Source of the DNA: Ranitomeya imitator
Lineage: Eukaryota
Reading direction: 5' to 3'
Assembly: GCF_032444005.1 (NCBI RefSeq)
Contig: NC_091283.1
Coordinates: forward strand, 558,868,001 to 558,932,000
DNA: 64,000 nucleotides
Shown piece by piece: positions 12,480-39,335 of this stretch. The notes under the pieces are model-generated. The model was not told the DNA's origin, made no database searches, and saw only the letters and a list, made by a program, of their open reading frames with translations. A program made the translations under genes and the position numbers. Each line of letters begins with the position of its first letter. Position 1 is the stretch's first letter.

Positions 12480-12482
12480 TAA

Positions 12483-13171
12483 AGGTACCGTCACACTAAG
12501 CGATGCTGCAGCGATACCGACAACGATCCGGATCGCTGCAGCGTCGCTGTTTGGTCGCTGGAGAGCTGTCACACAGACCGCTCTCCAGGGCCCAACGATG
12601 CTGGTAACCAGGGTAAACATCGGGTTACTAAGCGCAGGGCCGCGCTTAGTAACCCGATGTTTACCCTGGTTACCAGCGTAAAAGTAAAAAAAAAAAAAAC
12701 ATTACATACTTATCTTCCGCTGTCTGTCCCTGGCGCTCTGCTTCTCTGCCCTGTGTAAGCACAGCGGCCGGAAAGCAGAGCGGTGACGTCACCGCTGTGC
12801 TTACACAGGGCAGAGAAGCAGAGCGCCGAGGGACAGACAGCGGAAGATAAGTATGTAGTGTTGTTTTTTTTTTTTACTTTTACGCTGGTAACCAGGGTAA
12901 ACATCAGGTTACTAAGCGCGGCCCTGCGCTTAGTAACCCGATGTTTACCCTGGTTACCAGCGAAGACATCGCTGAATCGGTGTCACACACGCCGATTCAG
13001 CGATGTCAGCAGGAAGTCCAGCGACCAAATAAAGTTCTGGCCTTCTAGCTCCGACCAACGACATCACAGCAGGATCCTGATCGCTGCTGTGTGTCAAACT
13101 GAACGATATCGCTAGCTAGGACGCTGCAACGTCATGGATCGCTAGCGATATCGTTTAGTGTGACGGTACCT
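12483..13171. mobile_element. Harbinger MITE, AGGTAC(C/T)GTCACA family, copy 1
   Basis: TAA|AGGTACCGTCACACT ... AGTGTGACGGTACCT|TAA. Two long internal palindromes (GGTAACCAGGGTAAACATCGGG...). Confidence 0.88.
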
Positions 13172-13368
13172 TAATTCTTTTGCGTTTTTGTCCGAATGCG
13201 TCCACTAGTCACTAAATCAACATCTTTCCTTTTATCCCAATCACTCCAACCACCTAGTAATGACAAGGTGTGTATGTAACGAATTAAATATGCAGTAGGA
13301 CTCGGGAGAGGAAGAAGATTATTTTGTTTACTGTTCTTTTCTTTGATACCTCTAGTTCTCTATTGCAG

Positions 13369-14239: not shown

Positions 14240-15796
14240 ATGATGGATGGTGTAATTGGGAGGATTTCGAGTTTGGTTACTGAAGTTATATTTGAGACGA
14301 ATCGCCTGGATATCATAGTGCGGGAGAAGGAGGCGGCAGCAGAAAGACGGATGATGCAACGGAGAAGGCGACGATTCTGGATACATCCAATCAATGAGCT
14401 GCGGATGACCAGGGGTGTCCAGTCCACTCTATCTGGAGTTGCGGTGCAACCCCCAAAAATTCTTTAGTTATGTACGGATGAGGATGGAGCATTTCGATTA
14501 TTTGGTTGGAAAAATAGAGGATGTCATCCAAAGGCAGGACACAAGGATGAGGCTTGCCATCACACCGGCGGAGCGGCTCATGGTGACACTGCGGTAAGCA
14601 TTTTTTCTTTATGTCATTGCTCATATTGAATGTGAGTACATGCTGCAGAGAATACTGCGCTGACACATTGCGCCGCATTTACTGTAGCATGTCATTTGTT
14701 GGTTTATGTGAGGCCATTCCACTTGTTTTTTTTTCTTGTGTCATTGGTCATATTGAATGTTATTACATGCTGCAGAGAATACTGCGCTGACACATTGCGC
14801 CGCATTTACTGTAGCATGTAATTTGTTGGTTTATTTGAGGCCATTCCACTTGTTTTTCTTGGTTGATGGTCTGTGCAATTTTTTTTTACATTTTTTTTTA
14901 TTTTTCCCTGCAGCTTCCTAGCTACGGGTGAGTCTTTGACTTCACTCCATTTCCAATTCCGGCTGGGGATTTCCACTATTGGCGGAATTGTGAAGGACAC
15001 ATGTCGTGCGATTTGGGACACTTTACAGCTGGAGTATATCCCACAACCAACAATGGAAATCTGGATGAGAAGTTCCGAACAATTTGAGCGAATGTGTAAT
15101 TTTCCAAATTGTGTTGGTGCTGTGGACGGCAAACACATTAGGATTGCAAAACCGGCAGGAACAGGATCAGAGTACTATAACTATAAAAAATACTTCTCAA
15201 TTGTACTCATGGCTATTGCTGACGCCAACTGCCGATTCCTTGCTGTGGATATAGGAGCGTATGGCCGGTCCAACGACTCCCAAGTGTTTAAAAACTCTCC
15301 GATGGGTCGCTGCCTGTATGGAGATACATACAATTTCCCGCCAGCAAGACCGCTCCCAGGAACCAGTGAACCAGCCATGCCATATGTGTGTGTAGGTGAT
15401 GAAGCCTTTCAACTGTCGCCGCACCTACTGAAACCATACAGCAGCCGTGAATTACACCGCACCAAGCGGGTATTTAATTACCGTCTTACCAGAGCAAGAA
15501 GAGTGGTAGAGTGCTCTTTCGGTATTTTGACAGCAAAGTGGAGAGTTCTGCTGACGGCAATAAAACTGGATACAAAAACTGTAGACGATGTTGTCAAGGC
15601 ATGTGTGGTGCTCCATAATTTTGTTATTTCAAAGGAGCCCGTTACCTTGGATGACGAACAATTGGAGACATCCTTGTGGGATTACCGAAGTGCCTCTGTT
15701 CGCTCCACAGGTTCTGTTACTAGGATGAGGGAACAGTTTGCTGAATATTTTTTGTCACCTGTTGGGCGGATTCCATGGCAAGACATAATTGTGTGA
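14240..15796 (+). pseudogene. Harbinger (HARBI1-like DDE) transposase; exons 14240-14593 and 14914-15796; one 2-nt frameshift near 14428-14431
   Basis: Splice CG|gtaagc...ccctgcag|C joins TLR-FLATGES. Catalytic GAVDGKH, GDEAF and VECSFG are intact. The frame changes between RGVQSTL and YLELR. The restored CDS would be 412 aa. Confidence 0.92.
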
Positions 15797-19299: not shown

Positions 19300-19880
19300 C
19301 TGCAATATAATAAGTATAATGGATTGAAAGTTAGACCAAAGCAGAAATAGGTAATGTTTACCACTAAACACCATGTTAAAATGAGAAAAATATGTGAACA
19401 CCCAAACCCAAAAACTGGTGCACGTTATACCATTCTTTTCCATGTCCCAAAAACAAAAAAAGGTAAACTGTGAGACACCTTTAAAAATATTTTTATGTTT
19501 TAAAAAAAAAACAATTACCTCCCCGAAATAAAATTTCAAAGGATAACCTTTATTAAAAAATGACCACTCAAACAACTCTGTATTGCATGTGTAACCATTG
19601 GTACATACACCTGATTTAAATTTACCTTTAAGAAATTATACTACGGACAATTTTTTAAGAAACATTTTATTAATATATAATTTTTTTCTTTTTTTTTTTT
19701 TTTAAATCACAATGGAGCAGAAATGCTCTTTATTTTAAAATACAAGTACATCGAATGGGAATGGTTAAGTAAATTTAAAAAAAAAAAATATAACCTCAAG
19801 CTGCAGACCATTAGACTTTGCAATAATACATCCATTTTAATAAACAAAAAAAAAAAAAAGTGCACAAAACACTATACTAA

Positions 19881-20609
19881 AGGTACTGTCACACTAGACG
19901 ATATCGCTAGCGATCTGTGACGTTGCAGCGTCCTCACTAGCGATATCGTCCAGTGTGACAGGCAGCAGCGATCAGGCCCCTGCTGTGATGTCGCTGGTCG
20001 GGGAATAAAGTCCAGAACTTTATTTGGTCGCTGGACTCCCCGCAGACATCGCTGAATCGGCGTGTGTGACACCGATTCAGCGATGTCTTTGCTGGTAACC
20101 AGGGTAAACATCGGGTAACTAAGCGCAGGGCGGCGCTTAGTAACCCGATGTTTACCCTGGTTACCAGCGTAAAAAAACAAACAGTACATACTTACATTCA
20201 GCTGTCTGTCCCCTGCCGTCTGGTTCCTGCAATGACTGCTGGCCGGAAAGTGAAAGTGAAAGCACAGCACAGCGGTGAGTCACACAGCGATGACTCACCG
20301 CTGTGGCTGTGCTCTGCTTTCACTTTACGGCCAGCATTCAGTGCAGTAACCAGACGGCAGGGGACAGACAGCTGAATGTAAGTATGTACTGTTTGTTTTT
20401 TTACGCTGGTAACCAGGGTAAACATCGGGTTACTAAGCGCGGCCCTGCGCTTAGTTACCCGATGTTTACCCTGGTTTACCGGGGACCTCTGGATCGTTGG
20501 TCGCTGGAGAGCGGTCTTTGTGACAGCTCTCCAGCGACCAAACAGCGACGCTGCAGCGATCCGGATCGTTGTCGGTATCGCTGCAGCGTCGCTAAGTGTG
20601 ACGGTACCT
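19881..20609. mobile_element. Harbinger MITE, AGGTAC family, copy 2 (inside the autonomous Harbinger)
   Basis: TAA|AGGTACTGTCACACT ... GTGTGACGGTACCT|TAA. Confidence 0.88.
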
Positions 20610-20612
20610 TAA

Positions 20613-21304
20613 AGGTACCGTCACAATGAACGATATCGCTAGCAAACCGTGACGTTGCAGCGTCCTGGTTAGCGATATCGTTCAGTTTGACACACAGCGG
20701 CGATCAGAATCCTGCTGTGATGTCATTGGTCGCTGCAGAAAGTCCAGAACTTTATTTCGTTGCTGGACTTTATGTAGACATCGCTGAATCGCCGTGTGTG
20801 ACGCCAATTAAGCGATTTGTTCACTGGTAACTAGGGTAAACATCAGGTTACTAAGCGCGGCTCTGCACTTATTAACCCGATGTTTACCCTGGTTAACAGT
20901 GTAAAAGTAAGAAAAAACACAAACACTTCATACTTATGTTCCGCTGTCTGTCCCTCGGCGTTCTGCTTCTCTGCCCTGTATAAGCACAGCGGCCGGAAAG
21001 CAGAGTGGTGACGTCACCGCTCTGCTCTGCTTTACGGCTGGCTGGCGCTCACAATGCAGAGAAGCACAGCACGGGGACAGACAGCGGATATTTTTTTTTT
21101 TACTTTTACACTGGTAACCATGGTAAACATCGGGTTACTAAGCGCGGCTATGCACTTAGTAACCCCATGTTTACCCTGGTTACTGGCATCGTTGGTTGCT
21201 GGAGAGCTGTCTGTGTAACAGCTCTCCAGCGACCAAACAGCGACGCTGCAGTGATCCGGATTATTGTCGGTATTGCTGCAGCGTCACTCAGTGTGACGGT
21301 ACCT
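20613..21304. mobile_element. Harbinger MITE, AGGTAC family, copy 3 (shares a TAA with copy 2)
   Basis: GGTACCT|TAA|AGGTACC junction at 20603-20619. Right end GTGACGGTACCT|TAA. Confidence 0.88.
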
Positions 21305-21771
21305 TAATTAGTAAATACATCAAAAATCAATATTAACCAATATGGCATTGACAAATGCACATGCAACCAACAAGACGCACACAAACATACCTGCAAGCCG
21401 AGTCATAACGCAAGCATAACACATGAACAGTCGCAATATTGACGAAGGCATAATAAGGTGCAGGCACGTGAACACATACATACAAAAGCACACAGCAGTA
21501 CAAAAATAAACACACACACCCACACACACACACACACACACGGCCATCAGTCCTCCGGCTGGAGCTTGATATCTTCACAGTGGCAGGCCTCACGGTGGAT
21601 CTGGACTGTAGCATGGCAATGGCTGTTGCAGGATGACGGCAGGCCTCAGGTTGGATTCAGGTTTTATAAGCTCTTGCTATAGTCAGTACGTCATACACAA
21701 ATGCGCACACACACACACACACACAAATGGCAATATACTCACACTGTTGTAGTGTGTCTGGTCCTTGCTGC

Positions 21772-22201: not shown

Positions 22202-23039
22202 GATTTGGGGATGTCTGGCCATTTAGATAAAAACACCTGTTTCTGAGCATGCTCAGTAGAAAAAAACGTATTGCAGCGCTGCATTGCGTCGTACGACGTG
22301 TCTCGACGCATCCGTCGCTCATAGACTTTCATTCTAGCAAAAGACGCATGCCGACGAATGCGCCGAGACACGTTTTATTGGCGGAGACAAAAAACGTTAC
22401 AATCTTCTTTTTTCCAGACGACGTGTCGCCTCTTTTCGACGCATCCGTCGAAAGACGTATACCGACGAATGCAAATCCGTCGCAATACGTCGCCAATACA
22501 AGTCTATGGGGAAAAAACGTATGCAGCAAAATATTTTGCTGCATACGTTTTTTCTGCAAAACGACGCATTTTAACGTATTGCAGTTAACGCTAGTGTGAA
22601 AGTAGCCTAAGAGATGAAAAAATAGCCCCTCCTGAAAATGCAGCAGATGTTGGATGTATTCTATAGCTGCATCAGCCACTATCGGTGTTGGCACGGTTCA
22701 TGGCCGTTTAAACCCATTAGATGCTGTTTTTAAAAGTGGCATTTAGATGGTTAATTGCAGGAGAGGGCTTTTTATTTAAAGCACCACTCCAGTGGGGTTT
22801 TTTATTGTGAAGAAGTAGCACTTCTAATCTAAGCTGCCCCTAGTCTTACACTTATCTGCTGCCATCTTCTCTTTTTATGGCCATCGCAGTCATATCTTTT
22901 AGTGACAAGATGGTTCCGATGAAAGGTGAAGGCACCAGTGGGAAAGACCGAAGGCCTCATTCAAAAGTTCCTTTTTTTTTTTTTTCCCCCACACATCACA
23001 CACAAGAAAATCAGACTGAGTATTCTGATCAGAGTTTAA

Positions 23040-23425
23040 AGGGAACCTGTCACCCCGTTTTTTCAAGATGATATAAAAATAGCGCTAAATAGGGGCAGAG
23101 CTGGGCTTTAAATTAGTGTGTTTTTGGAGCCTTTATTCCCCACCTATGCTGCCGAAATACCTTTGTAAAGTTGCCGTTTTGGGCTGTCACTCACGCTGGT
23201 CTGGTCATATGGGCGTGGTGACAGCGCTGTTTCTCCCCCAGATCTCTGTTGGTGGCGTAATGGTGTGCGCATGCCCAGCAGGCGAATCCAGTGCGCAGGT
23301 GAAGGAAAAAAGCGCGATCTGCGCTATTCCGCGGTTTATTGGTGGGCGCGGCCATCTTTGTGAGGCCGCGCGTGCGCAGATGGTACTTTTCGGCTTCCCG
23401 GGGCTTCAGGAAAATGGCCGCGAAA
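23040..23425. mobile_element. Truncated Kolobok/T2 MITE (left arm of the 28433 family)
   Basis: TTAA|AGGGAACCTGTCACCCCGTTTTTTCAAG, highly similar to 28433-28800. Confidence 0.8.
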
Positions 23426-24763: not shown

Positions 24764-25171
24764 TAGTATAGCTACCGATATGTTTAAGAGTCTAAATATT
24801 CAAAGTTTGGAAATTGCTAATATCTGTTAGTCACAAAATTTCCAATATATTCATTAATGCACTGGTGTATATAAATCCCTTTAAAAGCATATATTTATTT
24901 AGAAATTATAAAACATGCACCTATAAACCCCTGTGCACAGTGAAAAGCTAAGTTTGTATCTGAAAGATCAGTCTATTGCTATTGCACTGATATGTAGGTT
25001 ATGTCTGCACTACCAGCCCACAAATATTTTGCCAATGCTAAATCCTCAGGAAATAAAAAAGATCCCCACGGCCTTCAGATAGATATATTGTGAGAGCGCG
25101 CTCATGAACTGGATTGGGGAACACTCATTTGGCAGCGGGATTAAGGCACACAGGAATGATTTTCCACCTAA

Positions 25172-26506
25172 AGGGAAGGTGCCACCAGTTTTTTTTGTAG
25201 TTTGTTTTTTTGTGAAATTAAGCTTAAAATTGTAAATAAAATGTATTAATGCAATGTTTGCACTGTTTGCAAACATTTCTATATGAAAAAGATTATATAT
25301 TTTCTTACAAATATATATATTGACCACTAGGAGTTTCCGTTTTAGACCTTAAGCAGCTATAGTAAGACTTACCAGCTTTACTGTTAGCTGGAAAATTGGG
25401 GCAGTAACTGCTGACATCACCATTTCCCTCCCCTTTTGGGTGGTCTAATACAGGGGTCCCCAACTCCAGTCCTCAAGGCCCACCAACAGGTCATGTTTTC
25501 AGGATTTCCTTTGCATTGCACAGGTGATGCAATTATTACCTGGGCAAGACTAAGGAAATCCTGAAAACATGACATGTTGGTGGGCCTTGAGGACTGGAGT
25601 TGGGGACCCCTGGTCTAATATCCCTGGGGCAGAATGAAGAGCAGCATCACAGGGCAGAGCCATTTTGTGTGTGACTGCCCTGTGATCTGCTATCACCAGC
25701 AGTTACTGCATCAGAAACACAGCTACAGAGTTTACAAAAAAGCAGAACACAGTGGGCTCAGCAGCATGGTGGACTGGAGGAAAAGTGAAGACATGTGGTG
25801 TTTATGTATGGAGCAGCATTGTCTGAGGGGAGCTGACTGTGACTCATCCCTCAGTAAGATAAGAAGGAGGAGATCCAGGTCTGCTGAGAATGGCCAGGCA
25901 TTGTGGAGGGAGGGGAGAGATACATTGTATGGCAGAGAGAGAGGCAGGCTGTGAATGCAGCTTACTGGAGATCACAGGGTCTGTGTGTGAGGAGGCGGAG
26001 AAGAGCAGGAGAAGCACACAGGGAGGGCAGTGTGTGAGAGCAGAGGATGTGTGCTCAGGACGTGTAGTGCCTGGAGTACAGAGGAGCATGGAGATAAAAC
26101 GCCCGCACTCCCCATCCTCCGTTTCCAGTGAGTGCTTCTCTCCTGCCATAGAAAGTAAGTGGAGCTCAGCAGATAGCACTGGGCTATAATAAAATGGCAG
26201 CTAGTCACACCTACAGCAGTGAATTGTGCAGCCCACAGAGGCGTGCCCAGCTCACTGCTAAAGCAGCTACAATGTTAGAGATAGGGTCAGCACTGGTCTA
26301 TTATCTCCTATATCCATGGGGTGCCGCAAAATGACACTGATAGTGTCGTGAACTGCTGTGAAACCAAGATGTCAGCCCCCAGTGCCTTCTTTAAACTCAT
26401 ATTACACACGTAATCTGTTTCACATGCATTTAAAACTTGGTTATAGCAGCATGTTATGCTACATTACAGTGATTTATTAATTATCTACAAACGCGGTACC
26501 TTCCCT
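25172..26506. mobile_element. Kolobok/T2-type MITE, copy B, inside the 3' LTR
   Basis: CTAA|AGGGAAGGTGCC ... GGTACCTTCCCT|TTAA. The other LTR shows the empty site CCACTTAAATAGTCC. Confidence 0.88.
25451..25612. mobile_element. hAT MITE (162 bp) inside T2 MITE copy B
   Basis: TIR CAGGGGTCCCCAAC...GTTGGGGACCCCTG with 8-bp TSD GTCTAATA. Single GTCTAATA at the same position in copy A (about 12148-12155). Confidence 0.93.
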
Positions 26507-27419
26507 TTAAGTAGTCCATACGGTTTTAGTTAGACACAGCATAAACCCGCGTAAGGTACAGTCCATTTCATTACATCAGCAACACAGGTTCTGGCTATCA
26601 GTCTTGTTCCAAAAGCAGATACACTTGTCTGCCTTTCCTACAACCCTCTTGTCCGAGGTTAACTTACAGGAGCTCCGCTCCACACGCTTCTAGTCAGTCC
26701 TGACTTCCAGAGAAATTGCCTTGCTGAGACCACTGACCGTACTATGACTGGCTCGACAAGCTCCAATCTGTCAGCTCCAGACCATCAAAAGGACGGTAGC
26801 TTCCTTATTTCAGATAGCCGTCCCGGACTCTGCAGGCCCATGACCTCCTCCATGTGCTTTCCAGGAAGCCTGTCTTCTTCCAGGAACTTCCAACACAGAG
26901 ACCATGCGACCAAACAGTCTTGTTATATCCAATGAGACACACCTATTGATGGGAGGCAGGTGGTTAGCCAGACCCGCCCAACTTTCCGGCTAACCTGCAA
27001 GCCCAGCCGTTATAAACTAAATAAGGCTCGTGGAACTACAGGTCCCAGAGAAACCTTCCAGGCTTAGAGCGCAGAGGACCTCCACCTCAGAGACACATAC
27101 CAGCCATTCACAGTAATGTCAGTCACTGTCTCACATATTTCCCCCTCCCCTGTTCAATCTTTTGGGGTTGAACACCTGTCATAAGCCAGGGATGCCGAAA
27201 CAGGGCACCCACGTTACTTTCCCTACTAGTTGAGAGGGCCTTCTCAGTCGTTTTTGAGCGTTTGTTACTGAAACATAGTCCCATCGCTGTCACCACATTC
27301 CTCTCCGTGAACAATGCACTATCGGACTTTGTCACTTCATGTTTTAGAGTCAGAACTTTCTTAGGCCTCCTCCACCCCCAGCGGTCAGTATGTAGGCACA
27401 ACTCCCTTGCACCCATAAC

Positions 27420-29315
27420 TACTGTCTGGCCTTGGGCTTCACCCCTTGAGTCACAGTCTGTCAGTGTCACCAGTCCTTTTTTAGTCACCACACTTCTCAA
27501 GTACGCCTCTTTAACAGACTTCTCTCCCCATGACCGCCTCCAATGGTTTGTGAGGCAGTGAGACTCACTTGCAGTCGAGCCTACTGTCTGATCTGACACT
27601 GACCTATCTAGTACGCTACAGGGGCTACTACCTGGGTTAACAGAGGAGTCACTATCTCTAAGCCTTCCGTGTCCTCTTCCATCAGTCCACCTTCGGTTCT
27701 CTCTGTTGTCAACTTCTCCCATTTCCTTTATTAACCAGAGACCAGTCATTCCATTTATCTCTACTTTCCATATTGGCTTCAGATTAAGTACATCCACTCT
27801 TTAGAGAACCCCTTCCATCTCTCTATATTTCGGGTTGAAAGTGGTCACCATCTTCTTTCCATTTCCTGCAACTGTTTATTAATTTGTAGTCTGTCAATCC
27901 TCAGCTGCTCTATCTCTTGGGTACGCCATACAATATTTAAAGAGTATTTGAACATTTCTAAGGCTTTCCATTGATCTGATAATGGCGAGTGGAACCATCC
28001 CATCTTCACCAGCTACCTGGGCTTCGTCATTAGCCTGAATCCTCACTCTCGCCACACTGGACTTATTCACGATTTCCTGCATTACTTTCTCAAGTCTCCT
28101 AATAACTTTCCTCGCCATACTTCTGGGCACTTGAGCGAGGTCTTCCACAAACCCCAACCTACTCTGAGCTTTCCTTGTACGCTCCAGACATCGAGCGGCT
28201 TCCTTATTCCTGAACAAGATCATCTGTTTCGTGTGAGAACCATGTAGGTGCATGTCACTCAGGATAGCCACTTGCTTCACTGTGACTTCCCTAGTTGACA
28301 GTATAACAAACTGCGTAGTCTCTGGCGCCCAGTTCACACTACACGCTTCCACCGCCTTCCTAAATTCTTCATGCACAGACTCACTGGCACAAGCTTCTCT
28401 CAAGTTCTCGGGTACCTCTACTACCCCCTTAAAGGGAACCTGTCACCCCGTTTTTTCAAGAAGAGCTAAAAATAGCGTTAAATAGGGGCAGAGCTGGGCT
28501 TTACATTAGTGTATTTTGGAGCCTTTATTCCCCACCTATGCTGCCGAAATACCTTTGTAAAGTCGCCGTTTTGGGCTGTCACTCACGCTGGTCAGGTCAT
28601 ATGGGCGTGGTGACAGCGCTGTTTCTCCCGCAGATCTCCGTTGGTGGCGTAGTGGTGTGCGCATGTCCAAGTGGCGAATCCACTGCGCAGCTTCAAGGAA
28701 AATAGCGCGATCTGCGCTATTCAGCCGTTTATCGGTGGGCGCGGCCATCTTTGTGAGGCCGCGCGTGCGCAGATAGTTCTTCTCGGCTTCAGGAAAATGG
28801 CCGCGGGATGCCGCGCGTGCGCAGATGGAGATCGCGGCGGCCATTTTACTGCAGCCGAGATGCGAACTCGGCTTCAGGAAAATGGCCGTCGAGATCGCCA
28901 TCTGCGCACGCACGGCATCCCGCGGCCATTTTCCTGAAGCCCCGGGAAGCCGAGAAGAACCATCTGCGCACGCGCGGCCTCACAAAGATGGCCGCGCCTA
29001 CCGATGAACGGCTGAATAGCGCAGATCGCGCTATTTTCCTTGAAGCTGCGCAGTGGATTCGCCACTTGGACATGCGCACACCACTACGCCACCAACGGAG
29101 ATCTGGGGGAGAAACAGTGCTGTCACCACGCCCATATGACCTGATCAGCGTGAGTGACAGCCCAATACGGCGACTTTACAAAGGTATTTCGGCAGCATAG
29201 GTGGGGAATAAAGGCTCCAAAATACACTAATGTAAAGCCCAGTTCTGCCCCTATTTAACGCTATTTTTAGCTCTTCTTGAAAAAACGGGGTGACAGGTTC
29301 CCTTTAAAGAGCGAA
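27420..29315 (-). pseudogene. FXR1: Intronless FXR1-derived sequence (post-Tudor region, KH2, part of the C-terminal region; KH1 missing) with frameshifts and a MITE insertion
   Basis: [43 protein letters not shown] vs FXR1 [74 protein letters not shown] vs [63 protein letters not shown] and GLVTLTDCDSR also align. Confidence 0.88.
28433..29303. mobile_element. Kolobok/T2 MITE, 871-bp near-perfect palindrome, inserted into the FXR1-derived frame
   Basis: TTAA|AGGGAACCTGTCA ... TGACAGGTTCCCT|TTAA. Removing it rejoins ...[15 protein letters not shown]. Confidence 0.92.
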
Positions 29316-32300
29316 GCCTCATCCTCTTCAGGGATCGACGGCTCCTGCTTTAGCTTGGAAGTTTCCATCAAGTCATCTGCCACGACTAGGTGTTTGTCTT
29401 GTTCAGCCTGTAGCGCAAACTCTCCCTGAGCTTCACACTCTTCAAGACACCTCCCCAAGATAGGAATTTTCAGCTCAGCCTCCTTATCACTCTGGAACTG
29501 CTGCTTTAAATCTATGACCACCATCTCCTTCTCCTGGTAGAAGTCCCCTTAATGCTTCTTTGAGCACCTCCATATCTTCAAATATATCCTTGTTCACTGT
29601 TTGACATGTTGACAGATGATCCCTGAGCTCAGAGACTTTTCTCCAGCTCATCCACTCCGTGTTCACTCACTTATCTCAAGACCTTTCCTTGCTCAACATG
29701 GTCTTTTACTGTCTCTCGGATCTCTGCTGGGTATCGCCGAAGCTTCCATCTTCTCTTTCCCACACTCCATCACCGAGCCTCGGGTTCTCTAGAGTCCTCG
29801 CCACCCACTGTCATGGGGTCACATGCCTCAATACAGTTCCCTTCCCCTTCAAGAGTTTTGACACCGTTGTCATTTTCCTCCACCGCAGAGTTGAAGGGAC
29901 CACCAAGACTGCTCTCCATGACCTTTGTGGGTTTTTCCTCCACCTGCGCTCTCAGGGATTCCTTCACCTACCGTGATTTCCGTTGAAGGATCTCTACCGT
30001 CACCATGTGTTAGTTTTCTTTTCAGCACATCATTGACTACCTCTTTGCTGGGGTTTGTCACTGGCAAGGTGACCTCCATATCGAGGACATTAACCTTGTT
30101 TGCATTTGACCCTGTCACTTCGTCAGTCCTCTTTTCAAAGGGTGTAGCCTGTCCTGCCTTTCTGCGGTCGCCATGTCCCCGACAACAAGAGGAAGACTTG
30201 CCACTTGTACCCGGCTCCACGTTACTGCTCTCTCTTTCCCTTGCGTTAGAGTTACAGTCTGAATGGGAGTCACCACCACTCACCCTGTCACCCTGGAACA
30301 ACAAGTCCACCTGGAGCTGTCCCGTTTCCAACGTGCCTGAGTTGGTCAAACCCACACTTTCTTCCGGTCACCCCTAAATCTGGGCCATCGACCTTAGGGG
30401 GCGCTACCTCATCCTCTTTATACATCATACTACCAAGAACCCCTTCAGCCGCCTGCTGCGGTGGGACTCCCTTAGGGTAGTTCCAGCTCCCTTCTGAGCA
30501 ATCACACTTCCCCTTCTCTCCCACAAATCCCAAAACTATTCAAAGTCCCGGCCAATTATAATAGGGTATGGCTAAAGGACATTGTGAAAAAGTTGAGCTG
30601 CTGAAGGTGCGCTGATATTACTGCGAATAATTTGCTGCTATTACATACAAACCACTTCAATCTTTGGACATCGACACATACTGGACGGGAAGAATGACTC
30701 TGTAATATACTGTATAATAGTTTTTCCTACTGTTCATAGTAACATTGTAATATTTTTTGGTTCAATCCCAATTAGGAAATGTGCTCCACTATTGTAGGAA
30801 ATGTGCTCCACTATTGCTAATGCCATCCAGCGTACATCTTGCCACATGTATGCAATCCTTGAGCAGCCGGTCGAGGGTGCATACTGCTGTGCGAGATGTG
30901 AGCACGTTGTGCATTTGGAAGCCCAGATACTGGATCTAAATGTGCAGCTGGCAACACTGAGATCCATAGACAATATGGAAAGGAGTCTTCTCCTCACTGA
31001 GCAGACGCTCAATGGGATAGATGGGAGGGATGGTAGGATGGTGCTGCAGGACAGCGAAGCAGCAAGCTGGGTAACAGGAAGCAGGGTAGAGGGAAGAGTG
31101 CCAGGGAGGCTAGTCCTGATCTGGCACACCCCAATAAGTTTGCCAAGTTGGCAGATGGGGGGGTGCCAGTACAGGGGTAGCACTGCTGCAGCAAGGCATG
31201 TCCTCTGAAAGCTGGAGGAGTGGCTGCTACAGTAAGGAGGGAAATAGGAGAGCAGGGCAGGCCAGACAGGTGCTGGTAGTGGGCGATTCAATTATTAGGG
31301 GAACAGATAAGGCAATCTGTCACAAAGACAGGGATCGTCGAACGGTGTGCTGCCTACCTGGCGCTCGAGTTCGACACATCGCTGATCGGGTTGACAGATT
31401 ACTGGGAGGGCCTAGTGAGGACCCCAGCGGTCATGGTGCACATTGGTATAAATGACAGAGTTAGAGGTAGGTGGAAGGTCCTTAAAGATGATTTCAGGGA
31501 ATTAGGCTGCAAGCTGAAAGCAAAGACCTCCAAGGTGGTATTATCTGAAATACTGCCTGTTCCATGCCAGAGAGGCAACGGGAGATTAGGGAGGTTAATA
31601 AGTGGCTCAAGAATTGGTGTAGGAAGGAGGGGGTTTGGGTTCCCGCAGAACTGGGCTGACTTCTCAGTTGGCTACAGGTTCTACGCTAGGGACGGGCTGC
31701 ACCTCAATGGGGAAGGTGCAGCTGTGCTGGGGTTGAAAATGGCTAGAAGGTTGGAGGAGTGTTTAAACTAGGGATTGGGGGGAGGGTATTCATTTTATAG
31801 GAGGGGAAGATAATGCAGATAGAGACCTGGGCCCAAATAAGGAAGTTGGGGGTGGCGGTGGCATGGGGGGGTGGGGTTAGAACAATTAATCATTTAAGAA
31901 AGAATAGAGGTGCAGAGAGATATATATATCGTGCATGTATACCAATGCCAGAAGCCTCGCCAACAAAATGGACAAATTAGAATGAATGTTTTTGGAGCAT
32001 AATTATGACATGGTGGGGATATCTGAAACATGGCTGGATGAGAGCCATAACTGGGCTGTTAACTTGCAGGGTTATAGTCTGTTCAGAAATGACCAAATGG
32101 ATAAGCATGGGCGAGGTGTGTGTCTATATGTAAAACCCATCCTGCGTGATATTATAGGTGAATCTAATGAAAATGTAGAGTCCCTGTGGGTGGAGATAAG
32201 GGGAGGGGGAAAAAATAATAAATTACTGATAGGGGTTAGTTAGAAGTCTCCAAAAATAATGGAAGCAATGGAGAATATCCTCATAAAACAAATAGATGAA

Positions 32301-34374
32301 GCTGTGACTCAAGGAGAAGTCATTATTATGGGGGACTTCAACTACCATGAAATAGATTGGGGAACGGAAATCTGCAGTTCCAGCAAAGGTAATCGGTTTT
32401 TGACAACTATGAGAGACAATTACCTTTCACAACTGGTTGAGGACCCAACAAGAAGGGGGGCACTGCTAGACCTAATATTAACCAACAGGCCAGACCGCAT
32501 AGCAAATATAAGGGTTGGGGGTCACTTGGGGAATAATGATCACAAAATAATAAGTTTTCATGTATCCTTTAATAAGATGGGTAGTAGAGGGGTTACAAGG
32601 ACACTAAACTTCAGGAGGGAAAATTTCCAACGAATGAGAGATGATCTTGGTGCAATTAACTGGGAAGATATCCTGAGACATAAAAATACACAAAGAAAAT
32701 GGGAGACATTTATTAGCATTCTGGATAGGACCTGTGCACAGTATATACCGTATGGGAATAAACATACTAGAAATAGGAGGAAACCAATATGGCTAAATAG
32801 AGCTGTGAGGGGCGCAATAAGTGACAAAAAGAAAGCATTTAGAGAATTAAAGGAAGTAGGTAGTGAGGAGGCATTAAATAAATACAGAAAATTAAATAAA
32901 TTCTGTAAAAAGCAAATCAAGGCAGCAAAGATTGAGACAGAGAGACTCCTTGCCAGAGAGAGTAAAAATAATCCCAAAATGTTCTTTAACTACGTAAATA
33001 GTAAGAAACAAAAAGATGATAGTGTTGGCCCCCTTAAAAATAGTCTGGGTGAAATGGTGGATGAGGAAAAAGCCAATATGCTTCATCAGTATTTACACAA
33101 GAAAATCCCATGGCAGACAATATAATCAGTGATAACAAAAATTCACCATTAAATGTCACCTGCTTAAATCAGCAGGAAGTACAGCGGCGTCTAAAAATTA
33201 CTAAAATTGACAAATCTCCGTGCCCGGATGGGATACACCCCTGAGTACTGCAGGAATTAAGTACAGTCATTGATAGACCATTATTTTTAATCTTTAAAGA
33301 CTCCATAATAACAGGGTCTGTACCACAGGACTGGCGTATACAAATGTGGTGCCAGTATTCAAAAAGGGGAAAAAACTGAACTTGGAAATTATAGGCCAGT
33401 AAGCTTAACCTCTACTGTGGGTAAAATCCTGGAGGGCATTCTAAGGGATGCTATACTGGAGTATCTGAAGAGGTATAACCTCATGACCCAGTATCAGCAC
33501 AGGTTTACTAGGGACCGTTCAAGTCAGACTAATTTGATCAGCTTCTATGAAGAGGTATGTTCCGGACTGGACCAAAGGGAACCCAGTGGATGTAGTGTAT
33601 ATGGACTTTTCAAAAGCTTTTGGTACGGTGCCATACAAAAAGTTTGATACATAAAATGAGAATAATGGGGATAGGGGAAAATAGGTGTAAGTGGGTTAAG
33701 AGCTGGCTCAGGGATAGGAAACAAAGGGTGGTTATTAATGGAGCACACTCGGACTGGATAGCGGTTAGCAGTGGAGTACCACAGGGGTCAGTATTGGGCC
33801 CTCTTCTTTTTAACATATTTATTAATGACCTTGTAGGGGGCATACAGAGCAGAAATTCAATATTTGCAGATGACACTAAACTCTGCAGGGTAATCAGTAC
33901 AGAGGAAGACAATTTTATATTACAGAATGATTTACTGTATATAAACTAGAAGCTTGGGCTTATAAATGGCAAATGAGCTATAATGGGAATAAATGTAAGG
34001 GCATGGACATGGGCAGAAGTAATAAGATGTATAACTATCTACTTAATTGTAAAACCATCAATGAAAAAGACCTGGGTGTATGGGTGAACGACAAACTCAA
34101 ATTTAGTGGCCAGTGCTACAAAGGGAAATAAAATAATGGGATGCATTAAAAGAGGCATAGATGCTCATGAGGAGAACATAATTTTACCTCTATACAAGTC
34201 ACTAGTTCGACCACACTTAGAATACTGTGTACAGTTCTGGTCTCCGTTGTATAAGAAATGGTTAGAGAAAAAAGAAATTCCTTTCTTGGCGCTTCCGAAA
34301 GACAAGGATAGTTTGAAGGTTGAGGTAATTTGCTCAGTACCAAATTTATTAGGACACTTTAATAAGAACAAAAC

Positions 34375-34406
34375 AACGCGTTTCAGCCCACAACGGCCTT
34401 CATCAG
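34375..34406 (-). ncRNA. Minimal hammerhead ribozyme core (Penelope-type)
   Basis: CUGAUGA-AGGCC-GUUGU-GGGCU-GAAA-CGCGUU. Palindromic helix III ACGCGU. One mismatch in helix II. Confidence 0.6.
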
Positions 34407-34425
34407 GTATTATATGTGCTTTTAA

Positions 34426-35384
34426 CCCCTTAATGACCGCCAATACGTCTTTTAACTGACCTGAGTTATAAGAGAATAGTATCCCCATACAGGTGACAAT
34501 CCAGCATCTGTCAGTTGTACACTATAGCTGACAACTTGCTGTACCAGCCACGATCAGTATTTGCACCATCTAAATCTGTTTAACCCCTTAGATGCTGCTG
34601 TCAATAGTGACTACATCATTATAAATGGTTAACAGAGCGTGGGGGCTTCTTCTTTGTCCCAATTGGTACCCTCAGATCATGATTTTGTTGTCCTGATGTT
34701 TGCCATGGCAATTCATGGCCAAATAGTGGCCTTAGAGTCTGATTGCTGTAGTAATCTGTTTAGAAGTTAGAGACATTTAGGTGGTAAAAATACACATTTT
34801 CATTTCTGTCATACCACTTTGCATTAATTCCTGTAAAGCACCTGAAGGGTTAATAAACTACCTGACAGCAGTTTTTGATATGTCAGGGGGTGCTGTTTTT
34901 AAAATGGTATCATGTTTGTGGGTTTCCCAATATATGGGACCCCTAAAGTCACTTCAAACATGGATAAGTCCCTAAAAAAATAAATTTTGTAATTTCTTTG
35001 AAAAAATGAAAAATTGCTGCTACATTTTTAAACCTCCTAAACTGCTAACAAAATAAAATAATATTTTACAAATGGTCCTGATGTAAAGCATACATGTGGG
35101 AAATGTTATTTATTAATGGTTTGCTGTGGTATGACCATCTGGATTAAAGGGATAATCATTCGAATTTAGAAAATTGCTAATTTTTTAACATTTTTCTCAA
35201 ATTTTTGATATTTTTTATAAATAAACACAAAAAATGTTGAACAAAATTTACCATTATCATAAAGTATAATGTGTCACGAAAAAACAATCTCAAAATCACT
35301 GGGATTTGTTGAAGCGTTGCAGAGTTATTACCACATAAAGTGACACTGGTCAGATTTCAAAAATTTGGCTCGGTCACTAAGGGG
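34426..35384. mobile_element. piggyBac-type non-autonomous element
   Basis: TTAA|CCCCTTAATGACC ... GGTCACTAAGGGG|TTAA. Confidence 0.8.
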
Positions 35385-36277
35385 TTAAAATTGTTTTAAA
35401 AGAAAGTTATCTTTATAGACTGGTGACTCCTAACACATAGCAGGGGTGTGCCTGAATTAATTGGGATTAACACTCCACCCCAAGTGAGTCAGTGTAATCT
35501 TAAACCAATCCTGGTGTATCAAATGTTATAATGGTATAATAAAAAAAAAACAAATTATATATATATGTAAATAAATATACAAGATATATTATAAATTGTA
35601 AAGTTACACAGTAAATCCTTTTGAAAAGTATTTAAAAAACAATTAAATTACATATCGTCTTAGCAAAATTTAAAAATTTAAAAGTTGGGTAAAGAGAAAA
35701 AAAAATAAATAAAAATAAAATAAATGGATGAATAAATTAATAAATATGCGTTGTTTTGTTCTTATTAAAGTGTCCTAATAAATTTGGTACTGAGCAAATT
35801 CTCTCAACCTTCAAACTATCCTTGTCTTCCGGAAGCGCCAAAAAAGGAATTATTTTTTTTCTCTAACCATTGTATTCACATGCAATCCTTGGATCAAGGC
35901 TGGCATAGTTCCTGCAATAGTGCTGCATACCGGAATATTATAAGGCGTGGATCCATTATACGGATCAATTGAATGTACATACAAGACATCTAAAGGGTGA
36001 GTGCAACAATATATATTTCTTGCTGTGAATATACACCTACACTTAGACTCTGCGCCCCTAGTCTCCCCTTTTATATCTCCTTCCGATATTGTTGTATAAG
36101 AAAGACATAGCTGAACTAGAGCGGCTGCAGAGAAGAGCGACCAAGGTTATTAGAGGACTGGGGGGTCTGCAATACCAAGATAAGTTATTACACTTGGGGC
36201 TATTTAGTTTGGAAAAACGAAGGCTAAGGGGTGATCTTATTTTAATGAATAAATATATGAGGGGACAGTACAAAGAC

Positions 36278-36971
36278 AAAATCATAGAAAAAAGGCTGGC
36301 GCACTCTGATATTAAGTACTCATATAAGAAAAATGGGGGTGCGAACCCAAGTGGCTAAGATAATATCAAAACAAACAGAAAAAGACGCCACTGAAACATA
36401 TTCGCACACCACCAATAATGCATATCAAAAAGGAACAACTTTATTGGAAGCATAGTTAAAAACAGTTAAAACCAATACAAACAACAACTGCCTCCCCCCC
36501 ACACATAAGGCCTGTACGACACTGCATGTGCTGCAGATATAGCACCAAAGTAGTAACGAATTTTGTACAAAATATTAGATGTGTACCGCTATTGGGACAC
36601 ACTGCAAAGGATCAAAGTATACTCCTATACAAGGTTACAACCACAAATAAGGGACATCAAAACTCCGTATAGATAAATGAATGGTCCTTTAAATCCCTAA
36701 CTGATGCACAGATTTAAACCAAGAATTGGCGCACCATTGAGAATCAGAGTATAATGAAGCGGATGTAACCCATGCCACCTCCTAATAGAGGCAAGAAGCA
36801 GAGTAGTCCCATGAGGAAAAATACCCCAGACAGGGCGGTGTGCAACCCAATTACCCAATAGTCACCTGAAATAGGGAGGGTGAAGACGGCAGCCAAGAGT
36901 GTGACAGGCCCGGGAGGCAGATGAGCCCAACGCGTATCGCGGCAGAAAAAAGCCGCTTCGTCAGGGGAAGT
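36278..36971 (-). mobile_element. Second Penelope-like insertion in CR1
   Basis: 14-bp TSD GACAGTACAAAGAC (36264-36277, 36972-36985) and a hammerhead-like core at its right edge. Confidence 0.65.
36929..36964 (-). ncRNA. Degenerate hammerhead ribozyme core
   Basis: CUGACGA-A-GCGGC-loop-GCCGC-GAUA-CGCGUU. GAAA is changed to GAUA. Confidence 0.5.
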
Positions 36972-37017
36972 GACAGTACAAAGACCTTTCTAATGATCTT
37001 TTTACTTGTAGACCTAA

Positions 37018-37741
37018 AGGTACTGTCACACTAGACGATATCGCTAGCGATCCGTGACGTTGCAGCGTCCTCGCTAGCGATATCGTCCAGTGTGACAGGC
37101 AGCAGCGATCAGGCCCCTGCTGTGCTGTCGCTGGTCGGGGAAGAAAGTCCAGAACTTTATTTCGTCGCTGGACTCCCCGTAGACATCGCTGAATCGGCGT
37201 GTGTGACACCGATTCAGCGATGTCTTCGCTGGTAACCAGGGTAAACATCGGGTAACTAAGCGCAGGGCCGCGCTTAGTAACCCGATGTTTACCCTGGTTA
37301 CCATCCTAAAAGTAAAAAAACAAACACTACATACTTACCTACAGCCGTCTGTCCTCCAGCGCTGTGCTCTGCACTCCTCCTGCTCTGGCTGTGAGCGTCG
37401 GTCAGCCGGAATACAGAGCGGTGACGTCACCGCTCTGCTTTCTGGCTGCCCGGCGCTCACAGCCAGACCAGAGAAGCAGAGCGCCGAGGACAGACGGCTG
37501 TAGGTAAGTATGTAGCGTTTGTTTTTTTACTTTTTAGGATGGTAACCAGGGTAAACATCGGGTTACTAAGCGCGGCCCTGCGCTTAGTTACCCGATGTTT
37601 ACCCTGGTTACCGGGGACCTCGGGATCGTTGGTCGCTGGAGAGCTGTCTGTGTGACAGCTCTCCAGCGACCAAACAGCGACGCTGCAGCGATCCGGATCG
37701 TTGTCGGTATCGCTGCAGCGTCGCTATGTGTGACGGTACCT
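37018..37741. mobile_element. Harbinger MITE, AGGTAC family, copy 4, inside CR1 ORF2
   Basis: TAA|AGGTACTGTCACACT ... GTGTGACGGTACCT|TAA. Removal restores DLFTCRPKTGTRGH. Confidence 0.9.
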
Positions 37742-37904
37742 TAAGACAGGGACAAGGGGGCATCCTCTACGTCTGGAGGAAAGAAGGTTTATGCGCAATA
37801 ACAAACTCGGATTCTTTACTGTAAGAGCAGTGAGACTATGAAACTCTCTGCTGTATGATGTTGTAAAGAGTGATTCATTACTAAAATTTAAAAGGGGACT
37901 GGAT

Positions 37905-38703
37905 ACTGATCGTGGGCGTCTCAATGAACACCCTGGACACCGGGTAGTCCCTAGCGACCCAATGGTTGCAGTTGACTTCCTTCTGGGAATCAGGCAGGGA
38001 GTGTGGCGCTGACCAGGGTCAACGAGCTCCCGAGTCTAGAAGTCCAGTCACGCGTTCTTCATTGACTTCCACAAAACACCTCTGTGATGTCTTGTCAGAT
38101 TGATATTCAGTACAGGATAGCTGACATGCACTGTTCGAACCTTGTTCCCGGCAACAGTACAAATGGCACAACTGCCGCCCCTTTTGCCTTGGGACACTCC
38201 CCCCTTTTTGGACCCCACCCCCTTTTGAGCAACCATACCCTTTTGGGCCACTGCCCCTTTTTAGGCCACTGCCCCTTTTTGGGTCACAGCCCCCTTTTTG
38301 GACTCCGCCCCTTTTAGGGATATCACCCCTCTCTGGGGTACACCCTGTGGACTCCCCACGGCACTCTCAGGCCACAGTTCGCACAGTACACTATCTCTCT
38401 GGGCTTGCACTGGCCCTTTAAGAGTTTGTATGACCTGGTCCACCAGTGTCCTCTTAGGACACCCCACCAGCTCCTGCTGGGGCTGCGACAGCTCCTGCTG
38501 GGGCTGCGATAGCTCCTGCTGCAGCTGCTGGCCCTGCACAGAACTTTGTGGACCCACCAACGCAAGCTGTAATCACTTTAATCTTCGTGGACCCACCGAT
38601 CCACGACAAGCCGCCCGGAGTTCGTGGACCCGCCGATCCACATCAATCACCTGCTGTAATCCTCCCAGGCACCTCCTGGATCGATGCCCACAGTCTAGCA
38701 CCA
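37905..38703 (-). pseudogene. Decayed gag and aspartic protease N-terminal half of the FXR1-carrying Gypsy; PBS-like site 38686-38703
   Basis: VTGLLDSG-SSLTLVSA, then RDYPVSRVFIETPT. Gln-rich gag-like remnant. About 20-bp tandem repeats at 38175-38325. Confidence 0.7.
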
Positions 38704-38705
38704 AA

Positions 38706-39335
38706 TGTGAGATAGCGCTCAGTGAATGTGTTGGGGAACACTCACATGGCAGCGGGATTAAGGCACGCAGGAATGATATTCCACTTAAATAGTCCATGCG
38801 GTTTTATTTAGATACAGCATAAACCCGCATAAGGTACAGTCCATTTCATTACATCAGCAATACAGGTTCTGGCTACCAGTATTGTTCCAATAGCAGATAC
38901 ACCTGTCTGCCTTTCATACAACCCCCTTGTCCGAGGTTACCTTACAGGAGCTCCGCTCCACATGCTGACTACCAGAGAAGCTGCCTTGCTTGGGACCACT
39001 GACCATACTGTGACTGGCTCGACAAGTTCCAGTCTGGCAGCTCCAGACCTTCAAAAGGACGGTAGCTTCCCCAGTTCAGATAGCCATCCTGGACTCTGCA
39101 GGCCCATGACCGCCTCCATGTGCTTTCCAGGAAGCCTGTCTTCTTCCAGGAACTTCCAACATAGAGACCATGTGACCAAACAGTCTCATTATATCCCATG
39201 AGACACACCCATTGATGGGAGGTAGGTGGTGGTGGTTAGCCAGACCCGCCCAACTCTCCCGCTAACCTGCAAGCCCAGCCCTCATAAACTAAATAAGACT
39301 CCATCATTCACAATAATGCCGTTCACTGTCTCACA
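38706..39335 (-). mobile_element. 5' LTR (630 bp) of the FXR1-carrying Gypsy
   Basis: TGTGAGA/TCTCACA termini, homologous to 25089-27135. Confidence 0.9.

Follow-up and report, generated by a model that had tools for sequence, protein, structure and literature searches.

On the minus strand of a 64,000-nucleotide stretch of the Ranitomeya imitator genome (assembly GCF_032444005.1, contig NC_091283.1, positions 558,868,001 to 558,932,000; hereafter the window), positions 25089-39335 form one long terminal repeat (LTR) element, all coordinates of which are read in minus-strand sense. Inside it lies an intron-less segment derived from FXR1. The locus is probably (roughly 0.8) a member of a multi-copy family of chimeric LTR elements that carries a conserved, captured FXR1 module. 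The family consists of non-autonomous LTR retrotransposons of poison frogs (Dendrobatidae), with FXR1-like relatives in Aromobatidae. Comparison of the predicted proteins shows a chimeric open reading frame (ORF) that has stayed open, probably through selection, in at least six deep lineages across three species. The window copy itself is a pseudogene that decayed after insertion. No description of an FXR1-carrying frog retrotransposon was found in the searchable literature, and a long-lived family conserving a captured RNA-binding module appears to be undescribed.

Structure of the element

The first-pass annotation of the window had read this region as an LTR element with an LTR pair, a site resembling a primer-binding site (PBS) and a polypurine tract (PPT), lacking reverse transcriptase (RT), RNase H and integrase. 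This was confirmed. The structural features of an LTR retrotransposon are present: two direct LTRs with TG...CA termini, PBS and PPT. With the later insertions removed, the sense-strand order is leader, tandem repeats, protease (PR)-like stretch, linker, coiled coil, spacer, FXR part, tail and PPT. The parts are listed below (P numbers denote predicted proteins, here of the relatives described further on).

38706-39335, minus strand: 5' LTR, 630 bp, starting with TGTGAGA and ending with TCTCACA; direct repeat of 26501-27135 plus 25089-25172
38686-38703, minus strand: PBS-like site TGGTGCTAGACTGTGGGC, 2 nt past the 5' LTR, TGG-type; putative, from sequence
38100-38685, minus strand: leader and gag remnant, with the leader peptide 'VDRRVHE'; P0157, P0006 and P0005 align by tblastn onto 38500-38138
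37886-38078, minus strand: N-terminal half of the PR-like domain, CFVEVNEERVTGLLDSGAR*...VNCNHWVARDYPVSRVFIE; one in-frame stop; aligns to P0177 over a nested block
30473-30580, minus strand: C-terminal half of the PR-like domain, ..PYPIIIGRDFE*FWDLWERRG; tblastn matches to P0177 (residues 70-101), P0005 (127-141) and P0157 (435-452)
29722-30472, minus strand: linker, about 0.75 kb; tblastn matches to P0177 (residues 226-306, E about 1e-12) and P0004 (187-251)
29529-29721, minus strand: coiled-coil segment, ..SELRDHLSTCQTVNKDIFEDMEVLKEAL..; two frameshifts; tblastn identity of 57-68% to P0157, P0006 and P0005
29309-29528, minus strand: pre-KH0 spacer, ..ALQAEQDKHLVVADDLMETSKLKQEPSIPEEDEASLFK; family-conserved (tblastn), predicted disordered, AlphaFold2 (AF2) predicted local distance difference test (pLDDT) score below 50
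27300-28433, minus strand: FXR1-derived intron-less segment; KH0 fused to KH2, start of the FXMRP1 C-core, FXR_C1 region, 'KKGLVT' motif
27164-27299, minus strand: family-conserved tail, ..DRWG..AQKRLRRPSQLVG / NVGALFRHPWLMTG..; frameshifted in the window copy relative to the family frame
27136-27163, minus strand: polypurine tract AAAAGATTGAACAGGGGAGGGGGAAATA, adjoining the 3' LTR; reads (Q)KIEQGRGK in ORF 27123-27797
26501-27135, minus strand: upstream part of the 3' LTR, matching the 5' LTR as a direct repeat
25089-25172, minus strand: terminal 84 bp of the 3' LTR, ending with TCTCACA

The portion GGGGAGGGGGAAATA of the purine tract directly adjoins the LTR. The LTR pair is 89.6% identical (Kimura two-parameter, K2P, distance 0.113), which at typical vertebrate neutral rates, uncalibrated for this species, would roughly suggest an old insertion, tens of millions of years in age. 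Pfam searches detected neither RT nor RNase H nor integrase, whether in the sense strand of the window element or in the family proteins, and the sense strand of the element likewise gave no capsid or zinc knuckle. Because none of these was detected, the FXR1-bearing element is regarded as non-autonomous. An Rfam scan of the element detected nothing. Self-BLAST and LTR comparison of the 64 kb revealed no further copies or solo LTRs of this family.

The FXR1-derived segment

The intron-less FXR1-derived region noted in the first-pass annotation was recovered by several searches. Pfam KH_9 (FMRP KH0) matches 28442-27897 at E=1.9e-20, FXMRP1_C_core matches 28012-27848 at 0.014 and FXR_C1 matches 27800-27126 at 3e-4. 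Against PDB, the 28442-27897 piece finds human FMRP KH0 and KH2 chains (1e-17 to 1e-18): the match covers human FMRP residues 132-214 (KH0) and then passes straight to KH2 of the KH1-KH2 crystal construct. The same piece scores 171 bits against FXR1, compared with about 125 against FXR2 and FMR1, and the region groups with FXR1 in the phylogeny presented below.

While the FXR ancestry of the region stands, its extent had been misjudged, as the lack of KH1 and of the Tudor/Agenet pair was overlooked. When the family was compared with FMR1/FXR using hhalign, homology extended from the first residues of KH0 (about FXR position 131) into the C-core helix, and KH1 was deleted as a clean 60-column gap in the profile alignment. 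The Tudor/Agenet pair has no Pfam match in the window or in the relatives, and the hhalign homology begins only at KH0. The cargo therefore comprises KH0, KH2 and the C-terminal region. The possibility that the pre-KH0 stretch is a diverged Agenet-2 domain was ruled out by the same hhalign limit and by its predicted disorder.

In FMR1/FXR-family genes the stretch equivalent to the captured segment covers many exons. Since the segment spans these and is nevertheless intron-less, an RNA intermediate is the only reasonable origin. Neither a poly-A tract nor a target-site duplication (TSD) is present at the 3' end of the FXR part, which abuts the PPT. The GLVT junction carries no insert and may correspond to the non-muscle form, in agreement with FXR1 exon 15. 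In the window copy the FXR part contains frameshifts and stops, and the GXXG loop of KH2 has become RRLE.

The consensus of the family tail is ..SRLVGQGD.G.R..PW.M..VQPHKFEQ.G, which has no significant match to anything. When the family tails were tested as an FXR1 C-terminus, Pfam found only the start of the C_core. A C-terminal stub of a Gmr1 pol had been proposed at this place in the first-pass annotation. Gmr1-like Ty3/gypsy elements have their integrase upstream of RT (PMC8220671), and in such an order the end of RNase H (..ADALSR) would be expected beside the PPT. However, the tail consensus shows no convincing match to ADALSR and the 'NVGALFR' of the window is not the family consensus; the proposal is not supported, nor did a search with P0157 residues 1-620 reveal an autonomous relative. 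The ORF at 27123-27797 (224 codons), described there as joining FXR1 to this stub, does run to the PPT but is partly out of the family frame: its middle is shifted (the family 'AQNRLRRFSRQVGQ' corresponds to 'AQKRLRRPSQLVGK' in another frame of the window), and its final 15 codons come from the PPT and the initial 13 nt of the LTR. Measured against the family frame, the window copy has no fewer than six frame changes and eight or more in-frame stops. It also carries four nested insertions, and its earlier assignment as a pseudogene is upheld.

Related chimeric proteins in poison frogs

An exhaustive HMMER (phmmer) scan of 1.84 billion representative proteins was conducted with the KH piece of the window. 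The best matches were not FXR1 but seven other proteins, whose identities span 47-63% and in all but one case fall within 56-63%. Each of the seven matches is one unbroken stretch, and these proteins therefore share the KH1-less join. Genuine FXR1, FXR2 and FMR1 matched in two separate stretches at 42-53% identity, and the window FXR part is only 53% identical to FXR1. In several relatives the FXR match lies about 500 residues into proteins of 730-895 amino acids. A word-indexed search with the same piece (candidates of 100-318 amino acids) gave zero matches, and a search with the full-length P0004 protein returned at least eight proteins.

RefSeq contains about 20 gene models of the same layout from three species, Ranitomeya imitator, R. 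variabilis and Dendrobates tinctorius. Their annotated names are 'restin homolog', 'RNA-binding protein fxr1-like', 'FMR1 homolog' / 'fragile X messenger ribonucleoprotein 1 homolog' and 'uncharacterized'; most likely, they are retrotransposon ORFs and not host genes. One cluster contains 11 D. tinctorius paralogues that are at least 90% identical and lie on different scaffolds. Pfam KH_9 is found in the relatives at 1e-15 to 7e-25.

In the relatives all segments of the window element recur, and their order is unchanged: the ..VDRRVHE.. leader, KGAVxQ repeats, the PR-like domain, the GGDSHSD...basic block and the coiled coil, followed by a spacer ending in ..EPSV.EE...FK, KH0-KH2 and the C-region. 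With tblastn, family proteins map colinearly onto the window and align in frame over both internal insertion sites, the nested insertions being skipped. For this alignment the three internal sense-strand segments were joined with the LTRs omitted and the stops and frameshifts unaltered, and it was used for mapping only. The approximately 1 kb of coding-like sequence that had been reported in the first-pass annotation is real and conserved in the relatives; since the alignments run in frame across the insertion sites, it is a conserved part of the family ORF.

At their 3' ends, the reading frame of five models (P0004, P0005, P0006, P0151 and P0177) is not closed behind the FXR part. It continues through '..PW.M..VQPHKFEQ.G' and then 'GE[VI]C..VT...', and this read-through aligns to the PPT and the first ~40 nt of the LTR of the window in the appropriate frames. 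At the other end, P0157 begins with sequence that aligns to the window leader immediately 3' of the PBS. The gene span of relatives is close to the ORF length (2,688 nt for 895 amino acids; 2,748 nt for 893 amino acids), and copies lie within introns of genes unrelated to them, in one case a tetraspanin gene and in another a V-set gene. To judge from these protein models, the other family members look like dispersed, LTR-bounded, intron-less retroelement copies. The product is shown to be encoded by one ORF that runs from the leader through the KGAVAQ repeats, a retropepsin-like remnant, the linker, the coiled coil, KH0-KH2 and the FXR C-region into the PPT and LTR.

The ancestral Gag-PR-FXR1 chimera of a non-autonomous LTR family, put forward in the first-pass annotation, thus has some 20 colinear models in three species behind it, and multiple copies with the same junctions and an open frame were found at the protein level. 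The circumstances named there as contrary to such a chimera (a retrocopy present only once and bearing a poly-A of its own, LTRs unrelated to each other, or a peptide that does not match FXR) are excluded.

Selection and predicted fold

The six deep lineages of the family (P0157, P0006, P0152, P0177, P0004 and P0005) are 42-57% identical in pairwise comparisons, with P0157 and P0006 at 71%. All six have open ORFs of 700-999 amino acids. Of 200 simulations of neutral substitution on an 895-codon ORF, none kept it open, even where amino-acid identity with the ancestor was still 85%; stops averaged 7.7 at that identity and 14.9 at 70%. Conservation is uneven along the protein, with regional identities of 0.67 in KH0, 0.64 in KH2 and 0.60 in the coiled coil, compared to 0.35 in the PR-like domain and 0.32 in the linker. 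In the GXXG loop of KH2, G887, R888 and G890 (P0157 numbering) are invariant in ten aligned intact members.

The region from the coiled coil to KH2 of an intact relative was modelled with AF2 at a pLDDT of 82. The model consists of a helix of about 100 residues (pLDDT >90), a disordered spacer, and then KH0 and KH2. Foldseek searches with this model found FMRP structures 4qvz (root-mean-square deviation 1.2 A) and 2qnd.

Phylogeny and inferred timing of the capture

A maximum-likelihood tree ('quick' search, SH-aLRT support) was built with R. imitator FXR1 as the one bona fide FXR1 reference. All 18 chimeric sequences, that of the window copy among them, fall into a single clade (SH-aLRT 100). 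Three 'FXR1-like' models of Anomaloglossus baeobatrachus, a member of Aromobatidae, make up the sister group (98). Together the chimeric and Anomaloglossus groups join R. imitator FXR1 (99), outside the named FXR2 and FMR1 clades; the phylogeny with FMR1, FXR1 and FXR2 suggested in the first-pass annotation thus places the family beside dendrobatid FXR1. Within the clade, the window copy is placed as sister to the rest of the family (89), and it either represents an old subfamily or comes from a species outside those annotated.

The Anomaloglossus models (P0179, P0009 and P0011) start at KH0, keep KH1 and have no retroelement N-terminus. Their N-termini are unrelated and one model covers 16 kb. 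Derived residues such as MHLQCLRTK are common to these models and the chimeric family. These models may reflect the captured gene at an earlier stage, or else copies that the host has co-opted. As far as the sequences go, the tree supports a single FXR1-derived origin that predates the split of Dendrobatidae and Aromobatidae, with KH1 lost on the stem of the dendrobatid family. Exon skipping as the origin of the KH1 loss would fit by size (about 60 codons) but is not favoured, because the Anomaloglossus sisters keep KH1 and yet share the 5' limit and the derived residues.

Proposed origin and function

In an ancestor of the family, RT probably switched templates between the element RNA and a co-packaged host FXR1 mRNA. 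A 5'-truncated, spliced FXR1 cDNA starting at KH0 would thereby have taken the place of RT, RNase H and integrase. KH1 would have been lost on the family stem. As the element has no pol, it would be copied in trans by an autonomous partner.

LINE-1 ORF1p has a coiled coil followed by an RNA-binding domain, which is an RRM and not a KH domain. By analogy, the chimeric protein may be a multimerising RNA-binding factor that aids the RNA of its own element through cis-preferential ribonucleoprotein formation, packaging or translation; the odds of this are about even. The FXR1 chimera would then substitute for the lost capsid and nucleocapsid. The likeness to LINE-1 ORF1p is a functional hypothesis only, the two proteins having no sequence or fold relationship.

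In a broader and more tentative proposal, to which we give somewhat less than an even chance, the element lineage would have carried the FXR1 module for tens of millions of years and would depend on it. Fused to the coiled coil, the module would serve either as a Gag/nucleocapsid substitute, acting as RNA chaperone and packaging factor of the element, or as a germ-line decoy of FXR1/FMRP-linked control. That chance covers both forms jointly. As a decoy, the protein might interfere dominantly with host FXR1/FMRP-linked translational control and small-RNA silencing.

If the proposal is true, this would be the first long-lived animal retrotransposon family with a captured host RNA-binding protein as adaptive cargo. 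Earlier captures of host cDNA by LTR elements are mostly young, single, decaying loci or short-lived oncogenic retroviruses. In the frog family, an RNA-binding module was captured and fused in frame, spread through several poison-frog genera, stayed open and is conserved in its RNA-contacting parts. The family would also be a natural experiment in how non-autonomous retroelements gain new protein functions, in which FXR1 parts (KH0, KH2 and C-region, with no Tudor/Agenet or KH1) suffice for a selectable activity, and in the interplay of transposable elements with FMRP-family pathways in the very large, transposable element-rich genomes of dendrobatids.

Alternative explanations

The main rival to an element-serving RNA-binding factor is a domesticated host gene family, in which a Gag/PR-FXR1 fusion retrogene was co-opted by the frogs and is maintained by selection on the host. 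Occasional retro-duplication would then have given rise to the LTR-flanked copy of the window and to the young copies of D. tinctorius. The long open ORFs with conserved KH domains, their annotation as genes by NCBI and the grouping of copies by genus in the tree all speak for it. The Anomaloglossus relatives keep KH1, and their 16-kb, intron-containing model resembles a host gene using a retrocopy exon. However, there are many paralogous lineages per genome, and the 11 near-identical copies lie on separate scaffolds, with some copies of the family in introns of unrelated genes. In addition, the ORFs pass directly into PPT and LTR with no stop and 3' untranslated region of their own, and the window copy has a complete LTR, PBS and PPT structure yet is decayed. 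Domestication is therefore considered unlikely.

It is less likely still that the ORF is dispensable, in which case the family would be non-autonomous and passively mobilised and the intact models would be the youngest copies picked out by annotation. Gene prediction does favour intact copies, and the young burst in D. tinctorius supplies many models. Yet at least six lineages are intact at 42-57% identity, where about 8-15 stops would be expected and none of the 200 simulations stayed open; divergence varies strongly along the protein, KH0, KH2 and the coiled coil having changed least, and the GXXG loop shows no variation in the intact members. A single-copy FXR1 processed pseudogene, made by a LINE (long interspersed nuclear element) and lodged in an unrelated LTR element or between unrelated solo LTRs, is very improbable: the window does contain LINEs with RT and the TSD of the LTR pair is weak, but the FXR 3' end abuts the PPT with no poly-A or TSD, the order PR-linker-coiled coil-FXR-PPT-LTR recurs in about 20 proteins of three species, and the FXR part is closer to the family (56-63% identity) than to FXR1 (53%), sharing with the former both the KH1 deletion and the 5' limit.

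Several points nevertheless weigh against the reading of the locus as a member of a chimeric LTR family with a conserved FXR1 module. The 6-mers flanking the element (ATATTT and ATATAT) match at five of six positions in AT-rich DNA and are weak evidence of a TSD. The protease domain has no Pfam match at E<=1 in the window or in the relatives, and several family lineages have DPG or ESE instead of DSG at the catalytic position, which makes protease activity doubtful. When P0157 residues 1-620 were used to look for an autonomous partner, or for the source of the linker and coiled coil, only family members were recovered. The LTR pairs, TSDs and copy number of the other copies were deduced from protein models, and gene models over-represent intact copies. 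The tree has a single bona fide FXR1 reference and both derived clades are on long branches. Finally, selection could act at the level of the host rather than the element.

Comparison with known systems

In LTR-mediated retroposition, RT switches templates inside the particle, and the resulting chimera with a host mRNA is able to re-retropose (Tan et al. 2016, PMC5131818). The frog element resembles such retrocopies in that a spliced, partial host mRNA stands in place of the internal ORFs, flanked by LTRs and with no poly-A. Secondary retroposition of the chimera is seen in the ~20 colinear copies of three species, including the 11 at >=90% identity. The reported cases in fly, mosquito, zebrafish, chicken and mammals are young and mostly polymorphic single loci, whereas the frog chimera comprises multiple lineages in several genera and its captured ORF is fused in frame and conserved.

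Gag-Onc transforming retroviruses and maize Bs1 carry host cDNA in place of replication genes, make a fusion product and depend on a helper. The frog element is similar in that its replication genes were replaced by host cDNA, in the fusion with its own N-terminal protein and in its presumed helper dependence. Transduced oncogenes are short-lived laboratory or tumour isolates and Bs1 is a low-copy plant element (cited within PMC5131818); the frog cargo, in contrast, is an RNA-binding module that has been kept in more than one species, and nothing points to an env gene or an infectious cycle.

LTR elements of bdelloid rotifers keep gag and pol and add an ORF3 that is env-like or encodes a GDSL esterase or DEDDy exonuclease (PMC5408684, Rodriguez et al. 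2017). They too have captured and retained extra protein modules, but the frog element has no pol and its vertebrate host RNA-binding module is fused to a gag/PR remnant. With vertebrate FXR1 the frog family shares KH0, KH2 with GXXG, the C-core helix, FXR_C1 and the 'GLVT' junction. Unlike vertebrate FXR1, it is intron-less and multi-copy, lacks Tudor/Agenet and KH1, has a shortened, degenerate Arg-rich C-region, and begins with a coiled coil and retroelement-derived sequence.

Leader, protease-like domain and linker

Two tandem repeats were found in the leader region with Tandem Repeats Finder, a 21-nt repeat (x2.9) at 38468-38528 and an 18-nt repeat (x7) at 38189-38319. The latter codes for KGAVAQ-type peptides.

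The aspartic protease of the first-pass annotation was retained as a motif-level identification. The motifs 'DSGA ... IIGRD' occur at the appropriate position in the window, separated by a 7.3-kb block, but the domain was not recognised by Pfam, AF2 or PDB profile searches. The retropepsin motifs read LLDSGA and IIGRDF in the window and VDSGG and IIGRD in P0001 and P0177. An AF2 model of the PR-like domain from a nine-sequence alignment reached a pLDDT of 41, a quality insufficient for searching by fold, and profile comparison of the domain with the PDB gave chance matches only and no retropepsin.

The young D. tinctorius subfamily (P0157, P0159 and P0033) has two protease-like domains in tandem. 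The first is degenerate (..GRLESENQVTL..WERGRDF), and the second (..LLDPGSPVSVL..VIGRDLEALWDWW) is similar to the only such domain that the Ranitomeya P0004/P0005 lineages have. The arrangement suggests recombination between subfamilies.

The linker holds a family-conserved block, GGDSHSD...SSS-basic patch, at about 30316-30068, and has no Pfam match. Linker and coiled coil could be element sequence or a second captured gene.

Nested insertions and other features of the window

The insertions that interrupt the window copy occupy the three intervals below, two of which resemble miniature inverted-repeat transposable elements (MITEs).

25173-26500, strand not assigned: MITE-like insertion of 1.33 kb inside the 3' LTR; copy at 11360-12381; TTAA-type target
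28429-29307, strand not assigned: palindromic MITE of 879 bp, a secondary insertion; 362-nt arms, 98% complementary; TTAA-type flanks
30581-37885, strand not assigned: nested block of about 7.3 kb splitting the PR-like domain; plus-strand LINE and palindromic MITE-like repeat

The palindromic MITE at 28429-29307 is the sole interruption of the FXR part. In the nested block, the plus-strand LINE ORFs (31986-33949) match Pfam Exo_endo_phos_2 at 6.7e-12 and RVT_1 at 1.5e-11. The LINE region (30800-36400, plus strand) is degenerate and cut by an element with a 124-bp inverted repeat (34257-34379 / 35748-35871); a part of the LINE, 31502-32476, recurs at 10488-12482. The palindromic MITE-like repeat of the block lies at 37012-37745 and has further copies in the window according to self-BLAST and inverted-repeat analysis.

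The MITE-like elements at 28429-29307, 23035-23422 and 25173-26500 (copy at 11360-12381) have TTAAAGGGAAC/G-type ends and TTAA-type flanks. While 28429-29307 is a near-perfect palindrome with 362-nt arms, 23035-23422 resembles one single arm. Flanks of this kind suggest a family of piggyBac type whose activity postdates the insertion of the LTR element.

A second retroelement, possibly DIRS-like or gypsy-like, occupies 53398-55893 on the plus strand, with a 566-amino-acid ORF that contains RT (3e-19) and RNase H (8e-7). It lies in a GC-rich stretch (50-58 kb, GC about 0.52-0.55), and no LTR similarity to the FXR1 element was detected. An ORF at 14873-15796 (plus strand) contains a PIF/Harbinger-type DDE transposase domain (DDE_Tnp_4, 6e-29). 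A structured repeat of about 730 bp with nested inverted repeats (TGGTAACCAGGGTAAACATCGGGTAACTAAGCGC hairpins) is found at 37012-37745, 12479-13172 and 19877-21307. The window contains at least four copies of it, including a tandem pair at 19877-21307.

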